Shown here: positions 6,672-19,437 of the stretch, in pieces
Layout of the letters: each line of letters begins with the position of its first letter
How positions within the stretch are numbered: the stretch's first letter is position 1
Virus record (IMG/VR): IMGVR_UViG_3300023184_000025
Span: 281,155-345,154 of that record
DNA length: 64,000 nt
Direction: 5' to 3' (one strand)
The notes under the pieces: generated by a model
Told to the model about the DNA's origin: nothing
What the model saw: only the letters and a program-made list of their open reading frames with translations
Databases searched by the model: none
Translations under genes and position numbers: made by a program

Positions 6672-6768
6672 TTTTATTTTCCTTAAAAAAAGAATGAGTT
6701 TTAAATCATTCACTATTATGTATCAGTGTTTGCAACAATGTTAATTAAAATTGGGGGTATTTTGGTCC

Positions 6769-6792
6769 AAAAAAAACCCGCCGAAGCGGGTT
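6769..6792 (-). terminator. intrinsic terminator ending the tmRNA transcript
   Basis: AACCCGC-TTCG-GCGGGTT followed by a T run. Confidence 0.85.
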
Positions 6793-7064
6793 CTGAGTTT
6801 CTGTTACGAGGTATGTCTTACCCTAGACGGCTTTTATCAAGCTGCCAATGCGAACTGTTCGTCGTTTGCGTTTACGTTTTTTGCTTGATTTACGGTCATC
6901 GCCTACCGTGCTGTCCACTCTGTTACTCTTTGCCCTGTCAAAACCATGCTCACCCCCGACAAGAATATACTAACCTAGTATACTCTTGGTGGAAGTGCCG
7001 GGGCTCGAACCCGGGTCCAAGACAACTTTCTCTTCGCCTCTTCCCTTTCGGGGTTTACAGCAAT
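6793..7064 (-). ncRNA. ssrA: circularly permuted (two-piece) tmRNA; tag ANDEQFALAA
   Basis: T-arm and CACTTCCACCA (3' end 6987) come first, then a 29-nt hairpin spacer, then 5' GGGGGTG (6957) with G3:U70, then tag GCA AAC GAC GAA CAG TTC GCA TTG GCA GCT TGA TAA (6869-6837). Confidence 0.9.
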
Positions 7065-7068
7065 ATTC

Positions 7069-7701
7069 TTATTTAATCAATCTACGCTTTTGTAAATTCA
7101 ATTCTGCTATTTTAGCATCGTCTGGCTTTAGATAGTAATTCTTCTCACCATCGTTATACCAGTGTCTACCAAACGCATTGTTGTTTTTATTCTTGCGTAG
7201 TTGAGTCCATTCAATTGTTGTTATCCAACCTTCTGGAATTTGTTCTTTATTATACTTTTTGCGTGATGACAAGTCAACCGCATCTTTACCCACACACCAA
7301 ACTTTTCCAAACTGCGAATTGTTTTCTTTCTGTTGGTGTTGCTTTTCAGCAAAGGTCTTCTTACGCTTTTCCATTGCTGAGTCAGTGTTTGCCAAATCAC
7401 ACACCTTCTTTTGATGTTCTTTGTTTACAGAAAAATTGTGTTCAGTGCGAATACCTGTAAATGGATTTGGGTGTAGTTGATGACGCAACTTTCCCGCTTC
7501 TCGTTGTCTTATTCTTACTAATTCTTCTTTTGGGCTTAACTTTGCTAAACCCTGCCACGCAACATAATCTTGCCAACGACCATATTCTTCATATAACTTG
7601 CGATGTGCTTCTGCGTGGTCATCAACAGATAATTCTACAAGATTGCTTGGATCGTCTGTTCCGCCTGCGTGTTTAGGAATAATATGATGTTTGTGGCTCA
7701 T
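7069..7701 (-). CDS. free-standing HNH homing endonuclease with NUMOD-like C-terminal repeats
   Basis: HKHHIIPKHAGGTDDPSNLVELSVDDHAEAH HNH core; FGKVWC / IPEGW / FGRHWYNDG repeats; TATAAATA promoter 5 nt before ATG. Confidence 0.8.
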   Translation of the reverse strand: MSHKHHIIPKHAGGTDDPSNLVELSVDDHAEAHRKLYEEYGRWQDYVAWQGLAKLSPKEELVRIRQREAGKLRHQLHPNPFTGIRTEHNFSVNKEHQKKVCDLANTDSAMEKRKKTFAEKQHQQKENNSQFGKVWCVGKDAVDLSSRKKYNKEQIPEGWITTIEWTQLRKNKNNNAFGRHWYNDGEKNYYLKPDDAKIAELNLQKRRLIK

Positions 7702-12453: not shown

Positions 12454-12528
12454 TGGCCGGTCCTGAGAGGATCGAACTCCCACCCTCTGTTTCGAAGACA
12501 GAGATGATATCCATTTCACCAAGGACCG
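12454..12528 (-). tRNA. tRNA-Arg(UCG)
   Basis: Cloverleaf, anticodon loop CTTCGAA, CCA encoded. Confidence 0.85.
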
Positions 12529-12531
12529 ATG

Positions 12532-12605
12532 TGGTGCTCTCAACAAGAATTGAACTTGTGTTTCGCCCTTACCAAGGGCGTGTAATGCCATTATACTATG
12601 AGAGC
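12532..12605 (-). tRNA. tRNA-Thr(GGU)
   Basis: Cloverleaf, loop TTGGTAA, CCA. Confidence 0.9.
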
Positions 12606-12646
12606 AGAATTTGTAATATTGATAAAGTTTTAATGTAAATAAAAAC

Positions 12647-13372
12647 ATGCCTAATTATGATTCCTTTTATAAAAATCTTGCTAACAAAACTGTAGACTGG
12701 TTGCCCATGGACACTGAAGAATTATACAAGAAAAATCTTGACAAACGCCACGGTGATCTAGTACTACAGGGCTGGATAGATAATCACTTTACATATGAAT
12801 TTAACTCACATGGGTTTAGGTGTAAAGAGTTTACCGACAAACCTAGTATCATGTTTCTTGGATGTAGTTTTACAATGGGTATGGGATTACCTGTAGACTT
12901 AATTTGGCCTGAGTTAGTATCAAAGAATCTAAATTTACAATGTGTTAATCTTGGCATTGCCGGCTCCTCTGCTGATACAGCATTTAGGTTATGCCATGGA
13001 TGGCTAGATAAAATTAATCCAAACACAGTTATTTTTATGCAACCCCCGGGCATAAGATGTGAACTGGTAACCGACGATAGTATTAAAAATGTAGATATTG
13101 AAGATCCATCAACAAAAGAGTTTATCAAACTTTGGACAGTAGACGAAAATAATAATTATTTCAACACTGAAAAAAATACATTAGGTATACAAATGCTGTG
13201 TACTGCCAAAGGAATCAAGTTTGTTACAGTTAATGCTAACACACTCACATCAAGCTACTCTAATTCATTTGGTAGAGACCTTTGCCATCCGGGCATTGAC
13301 AGGCATCGAGTTTTTGCTGAACGATTGTCAATGAAGCTTGGAGCGGGTAGAGAGAATCGAACTCTCAACTAA
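12647..13372 (+). CDS. SGNH/GDSL-like hydrolase/acyltransferase-type protein
   Basis: FLGCSFTMG, NLGIAGSS, DLCHPG; TAAATA 5 nt upstream; 3' end overlaps tRNA-Gly antisense. Confidence 0.65.
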   Translation: MPNYDSFYKNLANKTVDWLPMDTEELYKKNLDKRHGDLVLQGWIDNHFTYEFNSHGFRCKEFTDKPSIMFLGCSFTMGMGLPVDLIWPELVSKNLNLQCVNLGIAGSSADTAFRLCHGWLDKINPNTVIFMQPPGIRCELVTDDSIKNVDIEDPSTKEFIKLWTVDENNNYFNTEKNTLGIQMLCTAKGIKFVTVNANTLTSSYSNSFGRDLCHPGIDRHRVFAERLSMKLGAGRENRTLN

Positions 13373-13412
13373 ACCTTGGCAAGGTCTCGGGTTACCATTA
13401 CACCATACCCGC
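13339..13412 (-). tRNA. tRNA-Gly(GCC)
   Basis: Cloverleaf, loop TTGCCAA, CCA. Confidence 0.9.
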
Positions 13413-13422
13413 ATTAAATAAC

Positions 13423-13893
13423 TCAAGCTACTTTTAAAGTTTTGAAACGATCAGCGGCATAGCTTGCGGCAAATGCGTTGGGTTTAACAAACGGTACAAC
13501 ATTACATGTTCCTTTAATATAGCCAATAGCCTGGCTAATAACACAGCTAGATCCATACTGATCATCAGGGTTAATGTCCAAGTGGACTTGAACCTGTCTA
13601 CCTTCAAATACATCTGCTAGCTTTAGGTACAACTCGCTAACTTTATACACTTCGGACATGAGGCGCATTGCTGGCCTATTGACTTTGTGATCGTAATCAC
13701 GTTCACGTTGTACCTCACCAAATAACTTACAACCGTTATTTCCGTTAATGTGTACAACAATAGCCAAGACGTAGTCAGCATACCACTGACCGTCAACACG
13801 CATACGTTCAGAATCACAGCCTAGATAAATTTTAGTATCTGGCCCTTGCGCTTCAATAAAGCTCTTGATTTCTTCTAGATTAATTTTTTTCAT
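13423..13893 (-). CDS. RNase H-like YkuK/DUF458 family protein
   Basis: IYLGCDS, VHLDIN, VKPNAFAASYAAD. Confidence 0.75.
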   Translation of the reverse strand: MKKINLEEIKSFIEAQGPDTKIYLGCDSERMRVDGQWYADYVLAIVVHINGNNGCKLFGEVQRERDYDHKVNRPAMRLMSEVYKVSELYLKLADVFEGRQVQVHLDINPDDQYGSSCVISQAIGYIKGTCNVVPFVKPNAFAASYAADRFKTLKVA

Positions 13894-13904
13894 GATTACC
13901 TCAG

Positions 13905-14684
13905 TTACGAGCTGGCATCAAGTACATGACTATACATGATGTCCTTTACTGTAGCAGTCCTTTCATTTTTGTTTTTGCTTCCCAATACCACAATCACGTA
14001 GTCTTTGTCTTTTTGTGTCACAAACAAACTCATACACCAACCTGCGGCATTGGTAAGACCAGTTTTGCTAATCACAATGTTGTTAAATTCAAACAACAAT
14101 GGTTGATTGGTATTGGTTAAGTTTACAATTTGAGATTTTTTCTTGACCTGTGTTTCAATTGAAACAGTTTTCTTAACTGATGCTTCTTTAATAAACCAAT
14201 AGCCGGATGCTGTTTGCACCATGTTGGCCACGTCATATACTGTGCTTACATTAAACACACTTAGGCCAGTTGGGTCAATAAATGCAGTATTATTCATTCC
14301 CCACACTTTGGCATGTAGGTTCATTTGTTTAACAAATTCGCTTCTTCCACCAGGATAATCTTCAGCAATAGTTTCGGCCGCGGCGTTGTCACTGCGAACT
14401 AGCATTGCATTTAACAGTTCGTATCTGGTGTAATATTGTCGTGGAATACTACTTGGAACACGACCACTAAGTAAAAGTTTTCTACCTAGGTCTTTGTTGT
14501 AGTCAAGTGTGACCATTGCGGTCATTAATTTAGTAATACTAGCAATAGGACGAATTTCTTCACCGTTGTGTACATATTGTGGTTTGTTGGAGACCACATC
14601 CAAGACTAATATACTTGAATCACTAGGAAATGCATAAGTGGGTATGCTAACCAGCATTGCAAGCATTATAAAAAGTCTCTTCAT
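13905..14684 (-). CDS. D-alanyl-D-alanine carboxy/endopeptidase (peptidase S11, PBP7-like)
   Basis: Signal peptide; SITK, SDN and KTG penicillin-binding motifs. Confidence 0.9.
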   Translation of the reverse strand: MKRLFIMLAMLVSIPTYAFPSDSSILVLDVVSNKPQYVHNGEEIRPIASITKLMTAMVTLDYNKDLGRKLLLSGRVPSSIPRQYYTRYELLNAMLVRSDNAAAETIAEDYPGGRSEFVKQMNLHAKVWGMNNTAFIDPTGLSVFNVSTVYDVANMVQTASGYWFIKEASVKKTVSIETQVKKKSQIVNLTNTNQPLLFEFNNIVISKTGLTNAAGWCMSLFVTQKDKDYVIVVLGSKNKNERTATVKDIMYSHVLDASS

Positions 14685-14717
14685 GATGCTTCCTTTGTTC
14701 TATTATATATGCTAAAT

Positions 14718-14794
14718 TGGTGCCCCAGAGGAGACTCGAACTCCTAAAATTTGGCTTCTAAGACCAACACGTATACCAATTCCGTCACCGGGGC
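14718..14794 (-). tRNA. tRNA-Leu(UAG) with short variable loop
   Basis: TTGGT-CTTAGAA-GCCAA then only ATTTT before the T-stem; CCA. Confidence 0.85.
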
Positions 14795-14957
14795 TTTAAA
14801 TACAGTATGATTAATTGTAACACATCTACTGATATATTGTATGAGAAATTGGCAAAACAGTCTTATATTTCTCCAACTTACCATAGCACACATCGTGTGT
14901 TTGTTCCTGATCCACTGCTGAATACACCCAAACCTAAGTTTATTCCTGATCCATTAT

Positions 14958-15033
14958 TGGTACCAAGAGACGGGATCGAACCGTCCACACCCGGATTTTC
15001 AGTCCGGTGCTCTACCAACTGAGCTATCTTGGC
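14958..15033 (-). tRNA. tRNA-Phe(GAA)
   Basis: Canonical cloverleaf, CCA. Confidence 0.95.
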
Positions 15034-15035
15034 AT

Positions 15036-15111
15036 TGGGGTAACTAATGGGAATCGAACCCATATTAACGGAATCACAATCCGTGGTGTTAACCTTTACA
15101 CTATAGTCACC
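15036..15111 (-). tRNA. tRNA-His(GUG)
   Basis: G-1 present, loop TTGTGAT, CCA. Confidence 0.92.
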
Positions 15112-15116
15112 ATAGA

Positions 15117-15401
15117 TTAATCTTGGTCAGGCGGTAATCCATTACTGCGTCGATCACGAAGAGTATCAGTGTTCTGAAACATTCGTTTCTCTTGCTGTGT
15201 CAACTCTTTAAACGTTTTCCTGGGATTACCGCACATTACACAATTTGGGTTGCCACAGTTCATAGCATGATGCTTGGCAAACTTATGTGGTTCTTCAACT
15301 GGTATCCCAAATTCTTTGGCAATCTTTACCTGCTTGTTAATAGCATTATCATCTTTAAGCAATCGCTTGCTATGTTTGAATTTATCGTTTTCGTCTGACA
15401 T
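15117..15401 (-). CDS. hypothetical basic protein with HH..C..C..C motif
   Basis: KHHAMNCGNPNCVMCGNPRK; GGAG RBS. Confidence 0.7.
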   Translation of the reverse strand: MSDENDKFKHSKRLLKDDNAINKQVKIAKEFGIPVEEPHKFAKHHAMNCGNPNCVMCGNPRKTFKELTQQEKRMFQNTDTLRDRRSNGLPPDQD

Positions 15402-15415
15402 TGAATACTCCTATA

Positions 15416-15505
15416 TGGTGGAAGCGGTGAGATTCGAACTCACGGACCCTTGCGAGCCGACAGTTTTCAAGACTGTTGCCATAAACCTGACTCGACCACA
15501 CTTCC
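15416..15505 (-). tRNA. tRNA-Ser(UGA)
   Basis: Long variable arm, loop CTTGAAA, CCA. Confidence 0.92.
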
Positions 15506-15508
15506 TGA

Positions 15509-15946
15509 TTATTCTACTTCAGGGGCAGGTTTAACTTTCCCCCATTCAATAAAATTAAATACTCTCTCTACAATAAAGAAAAAAGTCATATTTGTCAATG
15601 CCTGTGCTATTGCAAATAGCACAGCGTCGGACCCACTGCTTTTAATAATGAATATGGCTATGAGATATCCAACAAACATAGTTATTGCACGATAGATAAT
15701 GGTTTTAATTACACTACGTTTGATATTGTCAACTCCTGAATTGTTTCTTGCCCAACCAGTAAGCAACCACAACCTGTCATGCACATAATAAATTGCTGTG
15801 CCTACTACAATTATAATTAAGCCAACCATACCAGCTGACGACATGCTGGCGCCAACCAGCAGTGATAACAACATGGCAGCTACCACAGAGAAAAATCTGT
15901 ATATAACTGCTTTTACTATTGTTCTTGTTTGTGTTTCTTTTATCAT
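15509..15946 (-). CDS. DUF2061-type membrane protein (tandem duplicated unit)
   Basis: Two R(T/S)(I/V)(V/I)K..IYR repeats with TM helices and HDRLW / ERVF ends. Confidence 0.65.
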   Translation of the reverse strand: MIKETQTRTIVKAVIYRFFSVVAAMLLSLLVGASMSSAGMVGLIIIVVGTAIYYVHDRLWLLTGWARNNSGVDNIKRSVIKTIIYRAITMFVGYLIAIFIIKSSGSDAVLFAIAQALTNMTFFFIVERVFNFIEWGKVKPAPEVE

Positions 15947-15968
15947 ATTACTTCCTTATATTTAATAC

Positions 15969-16042
15969 TGGCGTACCCACTAGGACTCGAACCTAGACTG
16001 ACGGTTTTGGAGACCGCGATGCTGCCATTACACTATGGATAC
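15969..16042 (-). tRNA. tRNA-Trp(CCA)
   Basis: Loop CTCCAAA, CCA. Confidence 0.9.
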
Positions 16043-16046
16043 AAAT

Positions 16047-16124
16047 TGGAACAACGGGTGAGATTTGAACTCACGACTTTACGGATTTGCAATCCGTTGC
16101 TTTTGACCACTCAGCCACCGTTGC
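16047..16124 (-). tRNA. tRNA-Cys(GCA)
   Basis: Loop TTGCAAA, U73, CCA. Confidence 0.9.
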
Positions 16125-16129
16125 ATAAT

Positions 16130-16206
16130 TGGTCGGAATAGTAGGATTCGAACCTACGACCTCCTGGTCCCAAACCAGGCGCACTACCAGGCTGTGCTAC
16201 ACTCCG
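16130..16206 (-). tRNA. tRNA-Pro(UGG)
   Basis: Loop TTTGGGA, CCA. Confidence 0.93.
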
Positions 16207-16212
16207 AATAAC

Positions 16213-16287
16213 TGGTGGGTGATGAGAGGATCGAACTCCCGACAAACTGCGTGTAAGGCAGCGACTCTACCGCTGAGCTAATCACCC
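16213..16287 (-). tRNA. tRNA-Val(UAC)
   Basis: Loop CTTACAC, CCA. Confidence 0.92.
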
Positions 16288-16293
16288 TAAACA

Positions 16294-16367
16294 TGGAGCG
16301 GGGTAAGAGAATCGAACTCTCAGCATTAGCTTGGAAGGCTAAGGTATTACCACTATACGAACCCCGC
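16294..16367 (-). tRNA. tRNA-Gly(UCC)
   Basis: Loop CTTCCAA, CCA. Confidence 0.92.
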
Positions 16368-16385
16368 ATTGTAATTTACTTATAT

Positions 16386-16460
16386 TGGTAGCCATGGACA
16401 GTTTCGAAATGTCGACCCCGACCTTATCAAGATCGTGCTCTTCCTCTGAGCTACACGGCT
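16386..16460 (-). tRNA. tRNA-Ile(GAU)
   Basis: Loop TTGATAA; T-stem has one mismatch; CCA. Confidence 0.85.
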
Positions 16461-16466
16461 AAAATC

Positions 16467-16543
16467 TGGCAGGAGATATAGGATTCGAACCTATGCGTGT
16501 CGGAATCAAAATCCGATGCCTTAACCAACTTGGCGAATCTCCA
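16467..16543 (-). tRNA. tRNA-Gln(UUG)
   Basis: Loop TTTTGAT, U1:U72 mismatch, CCA. Confidence 0.9.
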
Positions 16544-16551
16544 ACAAAGCC

Positions 16552-16627
16552 TGGTGGTAATGGCTGGACTCGAACCAGCGATAGACTGCGTATGAAGCAG
16601 TTGCATTGGCCACTATGCTACATTACC
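16552..16627 (-). tRNA. tRNA with CAU anticodon (elongator Met, or Ile2)
   Basis: Loop TTCATAC, CCA. Confidence 0.85.
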
Positions 16628-16742
16628 ATATAGAGGCACTCTCAACAGCAGGCCTAGGAGGCAATCTGGTTGCTGAAACTTTTGCATCTGCAGATACTCA
16701 GTTTCTTCTCCTGCTTTGACTTACGCCAAGAATGCTTTTATA

Positions 16743-16818
16743 TGGTAGGACGTATTGGATTCGAACCAATGACCAATAGATTAAAAGTCTACTGCTCTAC
16801 CAACTGAGCTAACGTCCC
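16743..16818 (-). tRNA. tRNA-Lys(UUU)
   Basis: Loop CTTTTAA, CCA. Confidence 0.95.
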
Positions 16819-16869
16819 ACTAATCTTCTCACTCTTATCACTGTCCATGTGGACTCTCCTTAAAAACTA

Positions 16870-16945
16870 TGGTGGAGGATACAGGGATCGAACCTGCGAC
16901 CTACTGGTTGCAAACCAGTCGCTCTCCCAACTGAGCTAATCCCCC
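16870..16945 (-). tRNA. tRNA-Ala(UGC)
   Basis: G3:U70, loop TTTGCAA, CCA. Confidence 0.95.
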
Positions 16946-16951
16946 AAATAC

Positions 16952-17028
16952 TGGTACCACCTGAGCGAGTTGAACGCCCTACCCCCAAGTTCGTAGCCTG
17001 GTGCTCTATCCAAATGAGCTAAGGTGGT
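16952..17028 (-). tRNA. tRNA-Arg(ACG)
   Basis: Loop CTACGAA, CCA. Confidence 0.9.
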
Positions 17029-17034
17029 ATAAAA

Positions 17035-17110
<76 letters not shown>

Positions 17111-17115
17111 TTGTT

Positions 17116-17191
17116 TGGCTCCTCGACCTGGGCTCGAACCAGGGACAACTTGATTAACAGTCAAGTGCTCTACCAACTGAGCTATCAAGGA
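17116..17191 (-). tRNA. tRNA-Asn(GUU)
   Basis: Loop CTGTTAA, CCA. Confidence 0.95.
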
Positions 17192-17380
17192 ATAAAATAG
17201 TTAACACACTCCGAGGAATGTGTGTATTAAAGCACTCTAAAATACTTAGGCTGCCTGTTCTTAAAGAATGCTTTAATACGCTGTAATTTTTCCCTACACA
17301 AGAGTAGTTCCATCCTACAGGCCGCCCATTTGCCCATGTTTAGAGTGCAGGCTAGGATCTCGTTTCCTATAACACTTTGG

Positions 17381-17554
17381 CTAATTTACACTAAACGTTG
17401 ACAATTTGGTCAACGCTTCGTGATGTTTTCTAGCACGTTCAAACTTATCTTGAATAAGTTTTTGAAGCTGTTCTTTGGACATCTCTCCGAGAGCAGTTTC
17501 ATAAGCTTGTTCTACGATTCGTTCGTTTAATTTTTTGTAATCTATCTGTTTCAT
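17381..17554 (-). CDS. small helical hypothetical protein (57 aa, MKQIDYKKLNERIVEQ...)
   Basis: Manual translation; AAGGAAAA RBS; first gene after the attenuator terminator. Confidence 0.65.
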   Translation of the reverse strand: MKQIDYKKLNERIVEQAYETALGEMSKEQLQKLIQDKFERARKHHEALTKLSTFSVN

Positions 17555-17570
17555 TTTTTCCTTTGTAAAA

Positions 17571-17604
17571 ACAAAAAACCCCAGGGTGTTTAGTCCTAGG
17601 GTCC
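17571..17604 (-). terminator. attenuator terminator B
   Basis: GGACCCTAGG-ACTAAACAC-CCTGGGG-TTTTTTGTTTT. Confidence 0.75.
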
Positions 17605-17627
17605 TTTTAGAATTTGATGTATTTTTA

Positions 17628-17759
17628 TTACATCTTGTCTCCTACGGACCCTTGATTTTCTGGAATTGTAATTGCACAGTTAAAATTAAAACCGCGTGAC
17701 CAGGCAGATGCTGTCTGGAGCATAACGGGTTTTAACGATAACATGTAATGTTTGTTCAT
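17628..17759 (-). CDS. putative leader peptide B (43 aa, contains all 20 amino acids)
   Basis: MNKHYMLSLKPVMLQTASAWSRGFNFNCAITIPENQGSVGDKM; carries AGGGTCC complementary to the terminator arm. Confidence 0.6.
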   Translation of the reverse strand: MNKHYMLSLKPVMLQTASAWSRGFNFNCAITIPENQGSVGDKM

Positions 17760-17769
17760 CTTAGTTTCT

Positions 17770-17798
17770 ATTGTACTTTATTTATATCTTAAAGTCAA
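17770..17798 (-). promoter_or_regulatory. composite promoter: sigma70 with an embedded T4-late-type TATAAATA
   Basis: TTGACT-ttaagaTATAAATAaag-TACAAT (17 bp spacer). Confidence 0.75.
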
Positions 17799-17845
17799 CC
17801 TTTAAGGTAAAAATGTTGTGTTGTATAGATACAACACTCCTGAGT

Positions 17846-17920
17846 TGGTTGCGGGGGAAGGATTCGAACCTCCGTCTTCCGGGTTATGAGCCCGATAGTC
17901 TACCACTGACGTACCCCGCG
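17846..17920 (-). tRNA. initiator tRNA-fMet(CAU)
   Basis: C1:A72 mismatch, GGG/CCC in the anticodon stem, CCA. Confidence 0.92.
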
Positions 17921-17942
17921 GTAAAAGTTAGAGTTTTTATAT

Positions 17943-18018
17943 TGGCGGTCTTAGGGGGTAACGATCCCCACTCTTACGGCGTGACAAGCCGTCGTGCGTC
18001 CATGAACACTTTAAGACC
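17943..18018 (-). tRNA. tRNA-Asp(GUC), atypical T-loop
   Basis: Loop TTGTCAC; T-loop ATCGTTA; CCA. Confidence 0.85.
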
Positions 18019-18025
18019 AAATTTT

Positions 18026-18170
18026 TATAGTCAAGCACCGAGTATGCCAATTTAGGAGTCCGGTGCTTCCGTTCCAAAGCCGATGCAGTTATATCAGGAT
18101 CCGCCTCCGGCCGATGGGACCCGAATAGTGTATGCGTCCATACACGATACCTTATCGATGCTTGACTATA
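18026..18170 (-). ncRNA. candidate stem-closed RNA cassette
   Basis: 16-bp closing helix TATAGTCAAGCATCGA/TCGGTGCTTGACTATA; inner GTGTATG-GACG-CATACAC hairpin. Confidence 0.55.
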
Positions 18171-18261
18171 AAAACATATTGAAACACACTAACTACCTTG
18201 GTATGTACTAAAGTTCATAGAACCGCTACGACCCTATCTTTAATGTGCTTCAATATGCTCT

Positions 18262-18454
18262 GCATCCCCCGGCGGTAATTATAGAGTATCAAGATACGAC
18301 GCTATCGTACCCATCACACACTCCTTCCACCCGCTTCCCGACAGGGACCGTTCTCGCATTGCTAGCGGCCTTTTGGTTCGAAGACTACCACCCGTACATG
18401 TCACTGTACTTCTCATCGTGTGGGTCACACTATCCGGAGACACCCGGAACGTTC
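18262..18454 (-). ncRNA. candidate GC-rich multi-helix RNA directly 3' of tRNA-Tyr
   Basis: At least five helices (TCCGG/CCGGA, GTACA/TGTAC, CCGCT/AGCGG, TACGA/TCGTA, GGTGGTAGT/ATTACCGCC). Confidence 0.55.
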
Positions 18455-18541
18455 TGGTGGATGAGGTTGGACTTGAACCAACAATGCCATTACGACGGAA
18501 GATTTACAGTCTCCTGGGGTTACCAATTTTCCTACACATCC
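18455..18541 (-). tRNA. tRNA-Tyr(GUA)
   Basis: Long variable arm, loop CTGTAAA, CCA. Confidence 0.92.
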
Positions 18542-18734
18542 AAAATTAGGATAAGCTACTTGTTTTCCAAACAAGCCCTTAATTGAGCGGTTACTCTGTC
18601 CATCTCTTTTATTCTAATGTCTGTGTGCAGAGAGATACTGCCTATCAGATTCTGGATTGCTCCGCTAACGGTCTTCTGCCACCGGACCTCTATCGCTAGT
18701 CAAGCGCCATTTTAACGAAAATAGTAACGGGATT

Positions 18735-18809
18735 TGGTACTGGGTACGGGAATCGAACCCGTCTTACAAACGTGAAAGGCTTGTGTCCTAACCGATAGAC
18801 GAACCCAGC
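18735..18809 (-). tRNA. tRNA-Glu(UUC)
   Basis: Loop CTTTCAC, CCA. Confidence 0.92.
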
Positions 18810-18934
18810 ATAAAGAAAAACCCTATAGCAGTCCAGTTAAGCAACCGAACAGGGCCGTGTTAAAGAGAGAAGCCACGGTTGCAGGACCTAGTGCTCTTGC
18901 GAGGAAGTATCCAGGCGATGTGGCTTCAAAAACT

Positions 18935-19024
18935 TGGCGGAGCGACTGGGAGTCGAACCCAGTCAACGCTTTAACACGTTGTACGGATTAGCAATCCGCT
19001 GCCTTACCGTTCGGCCACCGCTCC
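18935..19024 (-). tRNA. tRNA-Ser(GCU)
   Basis: Long variable arm, loop TTGCTAA, CCA. Confidence 0.93.
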
Positions 19025-19344: not shown

Positions 19345-19373
19345 ATTATATGACACTTTGCGATTTTTGTCAA
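19345..19373 (-). promoter_or_regulatory. consensus sigma70 promoter for the tRNA array
   Basis: TTGACA-17bp-TATAAT. Confidence 0.85.
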
Positions 19374-19437
19374 CTACTTGTTTGTTGTATTTTTACAACA
19401 CTCTGTTGTTGTCCGGAATTGCTTCCTTCATGTTTCT

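Follow-up and report, generated by a model that had tools for sequence, protein, structure and literature searches.

The locus described here lies in a window of 64,000 nucleotides (64 kb), by which we mean the whole stretch of DNA that was analysed, derived from an uncultured jumbo phage with a DNA polymerase ~50% identical to those of rhizobial jumbo phages. No close relative was found among GenBank phages, DNA searches matching tRNAs only, and the host is left unassigned, as a search of 185,579 bacterial or archaeal genomes found the 57-aa protein of the locus in none of them. The operon is read entirely from the minus strand, in the order leader, hairpin and terminator, a conserved 57-aa ORF (17554..17381) as the first gene past the putative attenuator, a conserved structured RNA (17380..17203) that occupies the interval between this ORF and the first tRNA, and an array of 20 tRNA genes with a few ORFs interspersed (17191..12454). 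These 20 genes cover 17 amino acids, with Asp, Glu and Tyr missing. Upstream of the leader, a group of five tRNA genes (Ser-GCT, Glu, Tyr, Asp and Met; 19024..17846, minus strand) has its own consensus promoter (19373..19345) and therefore escapes control by the attenuator, and three further tRNAs are located at ~26.6-26.8 kb of the window. The ARAGORN-predicted tRNA-Asp of the upstream group (17943..18018, minus strand) is missing from the Rfam tRNA matches at E <= 1 and may be divergent or non-canonical, given that its T-loop looks atypical. A tmRNA with the tag ANDEQFALAA (7079..6746, minus strand) is found near the tRNA region, and the tmRNAs of relatives (L003:1700-2098, L010:3565-3981, L046:511-943) have much longer ARAGORN-predicted tags.

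The leader unit begins with a sigma-70-type promoter (TTGACT-17-TACAAT, 17798..17770, minus strand; 10/12 consensus matches). Its -10 box ends 10 nt 5' of the leader ATG (17759), and the leader mRNA is therefore nearly without a 5' UTR. All homologues carry a 10-12/12 sigma-70 match 5' of the leader, at a distance from the ATG of either 6-10 nt (a leaderless type that includes this window) or 20-61 nt, the latter type having a weak Shine-Dalgarno-like element. A Shine-Dalgarno sequence for the leader is absent in this window, and those of the relatives are weak only. The spacer of the promoter contains the motif TATAAATA (17786..17779, minus strand), and either TAAATA or TATAAATA occurs at a similar spacer place in about half of the lineages (L004, L005, L013, L024, L037, L045 and others). 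This motif resembles the late-promoter box of T4, and it is conceivable that early and late promoters overlap in the leader unit. Just 5' of the leader -35 box lies a palindrome (TTGTA-N4-TACAA, 17834..17821, minus strand) that in its longer form, TGTTGTA-N4-TACAACA, has only two copies in the 64-kb window, the second at 19398..19385. Both copies lie just 5' of the -35 box, in strong promoters that stand at the head of tRNA clusters, and many relatives have a similar hairpin ahead of the leader promoter; its role may be that of an operator, bound by a DNA-binding regulator, or of an insulating hairpin.

The leader ORF itself (17759..17628, minus strand) comprises 43 codons followed by a stop codon (17630..17628), and all 20 amino acids are present in it. 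In the leader fold, a mid-ORF hairpin (17718..17700, minus strand) has the Trp codon TGG as its 3' end. Its equivalent in relatives shows few compensatory changes only, and its Trp codon is positionally invariant; on this weak evidence it could be an RNA polymerase pause hairpin. The antiterminator is a three-tier hairpin (17652..17598, minus strand) supported by the fold, a swap test and covariation. Its helix P1 pairs AGGGTCC (17652..17646) with GGACCCT (17604..17598), or GGGUCC with GGACCC in its RNA core, P2 forms the inner helix, and the apical hairpin P3 (17634..17616, minus strand) encloses the stop codon. The two P1 segments are paired in the minimum-free-energy fold of the whole leader (z = -4.4), with 15 nt from AGGGTCC to the stop codon and 23 nt from the stop codon to GGACCCT. 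The intrinsic terminator, a stem followed by a T-run (17601..17567, minus strand) and supported by compensatory changes, consists of the arms CCCTAGG and CCTGGGG (17601..17595 and 17585..17579; -10.7 kcal/mol) around a 9-nt loop, with T6-G-T5 at 17578..17567. A consensus terminator scan missed it for the sole reason that the scan allows a loop of 8 nt. The 5' arm of the terminator and the 3' arm of P1 have CCCT in common.

A preliminary description, made from sequence alone, had proposed this promoter, the 43-codon ORF with all 20 amino acids, the complementary segments and the terminator, and each of them held, at the same positions on the minus strand. It had placed the stop codon 16 nt after AGGGTCC, where 15 nt are measured, and about 23 nt before the terminator, where the 23 nt lead to GGACCCT; its 7-bp antiterminator helix is corrected to the three-tier hairpin with the stop codon in the apical stem. 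The 20 tRNA genes that it had placed behind the attenuator do not follow directly, with the 57-aa ORF and the ~180-nt structured RNA intervening, and to these genes are added the five upstream and the three more at ~26.6-26.8 kb.

Using the 57-aa ORF as an anchor, we fetched 46 and then 55 loci of uncultured phages from IMG/VR, and all 55 have the same part order as the window. A terminator hairpin (-9.7 to -16.5 kcal/mol) with a T-run is found in every homologue. When unique transcripts are cut before the terminator 3' arm, the antiterminator is in the minimum-free-energy fold of 37/38, and in the remaining one (L009) the automated terminator call was wrong. The counted antiterminator pairing amounts to 10-15 bp and overlaps the terminator 5' arm or stem by 3-7 nt. 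The distance from the P1 start to the stop codon is 21-28 nt in most leaders, and four short leaders have only 11-12 nt; given this short distance, a terminating ribosome must unwind the 5' half of the antiterminator.

Since MAFFT misregistered the P1 5' arm by 1-2 columns between subgroups, and RNAalifold applied to the whole leader returned the terminator only, a covariance model and an alignment-free swap test were made. In the swap test, cognate arms reach -17.0 kcal/mol versus -13.3 kcal/mol for non-cognate arms (p < 1e-5). In the covariance-model alignment (A6), 92% of the cells are paired versus 77% in shuffles, and sliding the partner by one to three columns leaves at most 54% of the cells paired. 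Two-sided compensatory changes are seen in 17/21 antiterminator pairs, and 0/500 shuffles reached the observed values. Covarying arms include GGGUUCC with GGAACCC and GGGGUUUCAU with AUGAAACCCC, and one relative has a 15-bp version. The A6 counts lean towards structure because this alignment was fitted to structure, and the relatedness of the homologues by descent inflates the covariation counts. In the terminator stem, 3/7 pairs have compensatory changes. A U/C base shared by both structures covaries twice, its partner being A or G in P1 but G or A in the terminator, and such double covariation is the hallmark of two mutually exclusive folds, each of them in use. The parts of the element, their conservation and their covariation are directly shown by these comparisons.

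A helix upstream in the ORF was considered as an anti-antiterminator and rejected, because it makes no contact with P1 and the upstream helices leave the P1 5' arm free. No second copy of the attenuator was found in the window or in the loci of the relatives. An Rfam scan of the leader, at gathering thresholds and at E <= 10, gave noise only; the best leader match was His_leader with 13.7 bits against a threshold of 49, and Trp_leader did not match at the element.

The ORF is kept in 40/40 distinct homologues, where it always starts with ATG and has 35-53 codons, and gaps in its well-aligned body are multiples of three. The presence of all 20 amino acids in a single 43-aa ORF has a chance of ~0.02, and among the 113 small ORFs of the window the leader is the only one with this property. 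It recurs in 36 of the 40 distinct leaders (35-53 aa), including one with 35 residues and one with 38; two others have 19 kinds and two have 18. By comparison, among the other small ORFs of matching size in these loci only 13/1149 (1.1%) contain all 20, and 0.3-6% of random peptides of phage composition do so. Nucleotide composition was rejected as the source of the property, given that, when the nucleotides of the leaders are shuffled with their composition preserved, only 0.4-6.7% of the stop-free shuffles have the full set of 20 amino acids. Clustering of the first 38 leaders at 60% identity gives 13 clusters, 10 of which consist purely of all-20 leaders, and neutral replacement of 40% of the residues would retain the property only ~10% of the time.

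The presence of the amino acids is conserved and their position is free, an unusual mode of selection on a peptide. Cys occurs in 38/38 leaders, exactly once in 37/38, and because this singleton shifts among 12 alignment columns, it is presence rather than position that is conserved. Singletons of His are spread over 9 columns, of Phe over 8, of Lys over 7 and of Tyr over 5 in the same 38 leaders. A residue repeatedly lost and then regained at another position is the expected outcome of selection for at least one of each, and a folded or binding peptide would not show rare residues shifting columns. Some pieces of the peptide are conserved, namely W-[SL] and D-R-x-P-E, and there is no match to Pfam or PHROG. 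Runs of regulatory codons, as expected of a classical attenuator, are not found, with the rare amino acids occurring once. Most of the diversity is located ahead of P1, where 27-40 residues hold 17-20 kinds of amino acid (mostly 19-20), and the tail adds almost nothing.

The effect of ribosome position was modelled by masking the nucleotides from -15 to +11 of each A-site codon as the ribosome footprint and computing the probability of the terminator, P(terminator); this model is restricted to equilibrium, and the actual decision would be kinetic. In five of the eight leaders tested, including that of this window, P(terminator) stays near 0 when the ribosome is absent or its A site lies within codons 1 to ~33, rises to ~0.9-1 over the last 8-11 codons before the stop, and switches between the two folds at codon 33-37. 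Once the A site is on the stop codon itself, P(terminator) drops back to 0-0.6 and P1 is freed again. The other three leaders, which are divergent (L013, L044, L045), are ambiguous, the equilibrium fold favouring the terminator even without a ribosome. According to the model, the sensing zone would thus extend from codon 1 to ~33, and a ribosome in the last 8-11 codons would favour termination. Asp is predicted to go unsensed here and Glu to be marginal, because Asp41 is outside this zone and Glu34 at its edge; Glu is at the edge in most leaders. In the absence of an anti-antiterminator, read-through is predicted without a ribosome and termination would need tight timing. This logic is simpler than that of trp or his, since the antiterminator is the default fold when no ribosome is present.

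Immediately downstream, the ribosome-binding site of the 57-aa ORF lies ~5 nt past the T-run in this window and a few more nt away in some relatives, so that there is no room for a promoter of its own. The protein is found in 440 metagenomic clusters and is 38-100% identical across the fetched loci, with I-D-Y, L-N, V-E and K-L-I-Q as invariant parts; some gene callers give it as versions of 87-99 aa. It is predicted to form a two-helix hairpin (pLDDT 80). No Pfam or PHROG family and, for the model, no PDB fold matched it, and it is found neither in GenBank phages nor in the 185,579 bacterial and archaeal genomes. The structured RNA behind it takes up 178 nt of the 189-nt gap ahead of the tRNAs in the window, and an RNA of ~160-320 nt is present in every locus inspected (e.g., L005:5175-5394, L013:5175-5363). 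RNAalifold predicts 43 pairs, 23 of them with compensatory changes, which form several hairpins with conserved loops (AACGAG, GCACUUAAAACAU, AAACGGGCGG and GGAUGG...GAAAAAU) as well as a long hairpin with a variable tip. It has no Rfam match at gathering thresholds or at E <= 10, and no second copy in the window or the loci. Its last hairpin was considered as a second terminator, a reading that was dropped for want of a consistent T-run behind the hairpin. Six of 24 relatives inspected (L010, L011, L027, L033, L045 and L046) have a near-consensus promoter (10-12/12) in the loop of this last hairpin before the first tRNA: a TTGACA inserted in the terminal loop, together with a conserved TGTTAnAAT past the hairpin, gives a promoter directly 5' of the array. 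The insertion is missing in this window and in most loci, and 18/24 have no strong sigma-70 promoter ahead of the tRNAs.

In the relatives, 20-37 tRNA genes follow on the same strand where the full 10 kb are available (18 in L081), and in most loci they are co-oriented and start 160-330 nt past the 57-aa ORF. Almost no tRNAs are located upstream of the leader in the relatives, and this window is unusual in having them. Amino acids missing from a leader tend to be those for which the array has no tRNA: in L098, Lys is the only amino acid absent from the leader, and Phe and Lys are the only two without a tRNA among the 24 genes of the array; in L081, the leader is without Phe and no tRNA-Phe is found within 10 kb; and in this window, where the sensing zone is without Asp and Glu, tRNA-Asp and tRNA-Glu are among the five upstream genes. 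Across 26 loci, 561 of the distinct anticodons of the arrays can read a leader codon, versus 528 +/- 7 in synonymous recodings, of which 0/500 reached 561. The ATA codon in the leader tracks tRNA-Ile(TAT) in the array (20/3/0/3, Fisher p = 0.008), and this window has neither. Codon-to-anticodon matching in this window alone is not significant (16/19 versus 15.6 expected). These matching tests are post hoc and confounded by shared ancestry, and the matches between missing amino acids and missing tRNAs are few, which leaves the link between leader and tRNA cargo no more than suggestive. The tRNA-Ile(TAT) of most relatives is 90-95 nt in length (e.g., L003:5263-5354, L008:6063-6154), and an insertion or intron is possible given that this is unusually long for a class I tRNA.

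We contend that the unit is likely a ribosome-dependent transcription attenuator heading a phage operon, to which we assign a probability of about 0.72; that the leader is translated, how the events are timed, which way the element responds and what triggers it physiologically are all inferred, without experimental data. In this reading, host RNA polymerase would start at the strong sigma-70 promoter and a ribosome would begin on the nearly leaderless AUG. The last 8-11 leader codons and the stop codon would serve as the 5' half of the antiterminator, whose 3' strand takes the first 3-7 bases of the terminator 5' arm. A ribosome keeping pace with the polymerase would occupy, or would have just unwound, this 5' half, whereupon the terminator would fold and transcription would end at the T-run. 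Were the ribosome delayed in the first ~33 codons, or none loaded, the antiterminator would fold first and the polymerase would read on. Because these first codons hold nearly every amino acid, the element should respond when almost any charged tRNA becomes severely scarce or when decoding slows down in general, and the released tRNAs would shut it off again as a negative feedback. Each amino acid is, however, represented by one or a few codons only. For a single regulatory codon surrounded by many others, attenuation theory expects little response when one amino acid is mildly limiting, but good sensitivity if that codon becomes very slow or all codons slow together (PMC1183508). Severe tRNA loss or global decoding capacity would thus be a better fit for what is sensed than mild single-amino-acid limitation. 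Host shut-off, codon-usage mismatch and anticodon nucleases are possible triggers, all of them inferred.

The preliminary description had likewise read the element as a ribosome-mediated attenuator, and the comparative data support this. Both checks that it had proposed came out positive, covariation of AGGGTCC and GGACCCT (17/21 pairs; swap test p < 1e-5) as well as conservation of amino-acid diversity over peptide sequence (36/40 with all 20; Cys in 12 columns), and the position in front of a tRNA array is borne out by synteny with tRNA arrays conserved among the relatives. Its statement that stalling at almost any codon frees the antiterminator held in part, as the model predicts this for codons 1 to ~33 only. 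So did the proposed trp/his geometry, the fold without a ribosome predicting read-through, unlike trp. Among its triggers, cleavage of tRNAs by anticodon nucleases remains an inference.

Among the rival explanations, the one that survives best accepts the attenuator as real but takes the 57-aa protein and the structured RNA as its cargo, with the tRNAs expressed mainly from other promoters and only an indirect link to tRNA supply. In its favour, this ORF and RNA are the invariant immediate neighbours of the attenuator, a 10-12/12 promoter lies just ahead of the first tRNA in 6/24 loci, and five tRNAs of this window are outside the unit. However, the remaining 18/24 loci have no strong sigma-70 promoter before the tRNAs, which in most loci are co-oriented with the unit at 160-330 nt past the ORF. 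A sensor of all amino acids is also most sensible for a tRNA cargo, and the amino acids missing from leaders match missing tRNAs. We consider this rival unlikely as a whole, although it is possible that the protein and the structured RNA are the primary cargo.

Much less probable is that the ORF is an ordinary small phage protein gene and that the long hairpin merely stabilises the 3' end of its mRNA. Promoter, ORF and terminator would indeed make a complete unit, and parts of the peptide (W-[SL], D-R-x-P-E) are conserved. Against this, the rare residues are always present yet change columns, the downstream ORF is without a promoter, hairpin and terminator draw on shared bases in competition, with both partners covarying, and neither Pfam nor PHROG has a match for the peptide. 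An RNA-only switch, whether riboswitch-like or binding a protein or tRNA, with the ORF incidental, would be in line with the strong conservation of RNA structure and with another structured RNA downstream, but is likewise very unlikely, given that only 2-11% of composition-preserving shuffles are stop-free yet 40/40 homologues keep an ATG-started ORF, that the all-20 property has no RNA-level explanation and that Rfam has no match.

As a ribosome-dependent attenuator, the phage element meets several of the criteria by which trp, his and ilv are recognised, namely a leader ORF, a terminator, an exclusive antiterminator and no internal promoter. With trpL of E. coli it shares the short leader ORF, the exclusive antiterminator and terminator, the T-run, a stop codon ~60 nt before the release site, the choice of fold by ribosome position and a promoterless next gene. 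Unlike trpL, which has a run of regulatory codons and a 1:2 anti-antiterminator, the phage element has (nearly) one of each of the 20 amino acids and no anti-antiterminator, and its predicted default without translation is read-through. It further differs in that the 5' half of its antiterminator, including the stop codon, is inside the ORF, in that its cargo includes tRNA genes, and in being viral. The ilvGMEDA (Ile/Leu/Val) and thr (Thr/Ile) attenuators also sense more than one amino acid, but they do so for two or three amino acids by clustered codons and not for all twenty by single codons.

Other systems resemble the element in part. Leaderless polycysteine short ORFs of mycobacteria act as attenuators (bioRxiv 10.1101/834739) and have in common with it a leaderless short ORF as first cistron, at which codon-specific stalling controls the downstream operon; they differ in their Cys-specific codon runs and in controlling cellular genes. 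T-box riboswitches also read tRNA charging to control terminator read-through upstream of translation-related genes, but bind tRNA directly, have no ORF and respond to one tRNA each, and no T-box was matched by Rfam at the element even at E <= 10. In the stalling leaders of resistance genes such as bmrCD (PMC4191407), general slowing on a leader ORF relieves a terminator, with ribosome-targeting drugs as the trigger and no requirement on amino-acid composition. The pheST attenuator ties the expression of a translation-apparatus gene to the charging level of the corresponding tRNA. To our knowledge, no attenuator of this kind gates tRNA genes, and in the literature searched we found no leader with all amino acids, no attenuator before tRNA genes and no device sensing the need for phage tRNAs. 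Phage tRNAs have been linked to escape from tRNA-cleaving defences (PMC10264068, PMC11464382, PMC11042736).

A bolder reading can be put forward, namely that the leader is a roll-call of the phage's own tRNA set, its codons being selected to sample nearly every tRNA species encoded downstream. On balance we lean slightly against it. If it were true, any failed decoding step, as with host shut-off or tRNA cleavage by anticodon nucleases, would turn the array on and restored decoding would turn it off, making the element a self-tuning viral tRNA homeostat and a counter-defence sensor.

Why phages carry tRNA genes and how these genes are expressed is a long-standing question. If the attenuator reading is true, the element would be without precedent among described attenuators, both in reading all amino acids at once and in gating tRNA genes, and it would be a rare case of viral leader-peptide attenuation and a compact natural sensor of global decoding capacity. 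The promoter and terminator should work in E. coli or in reconstituted transcription-translation, and the on-demand deployment of phage tRNAs would thereby become directly testable.
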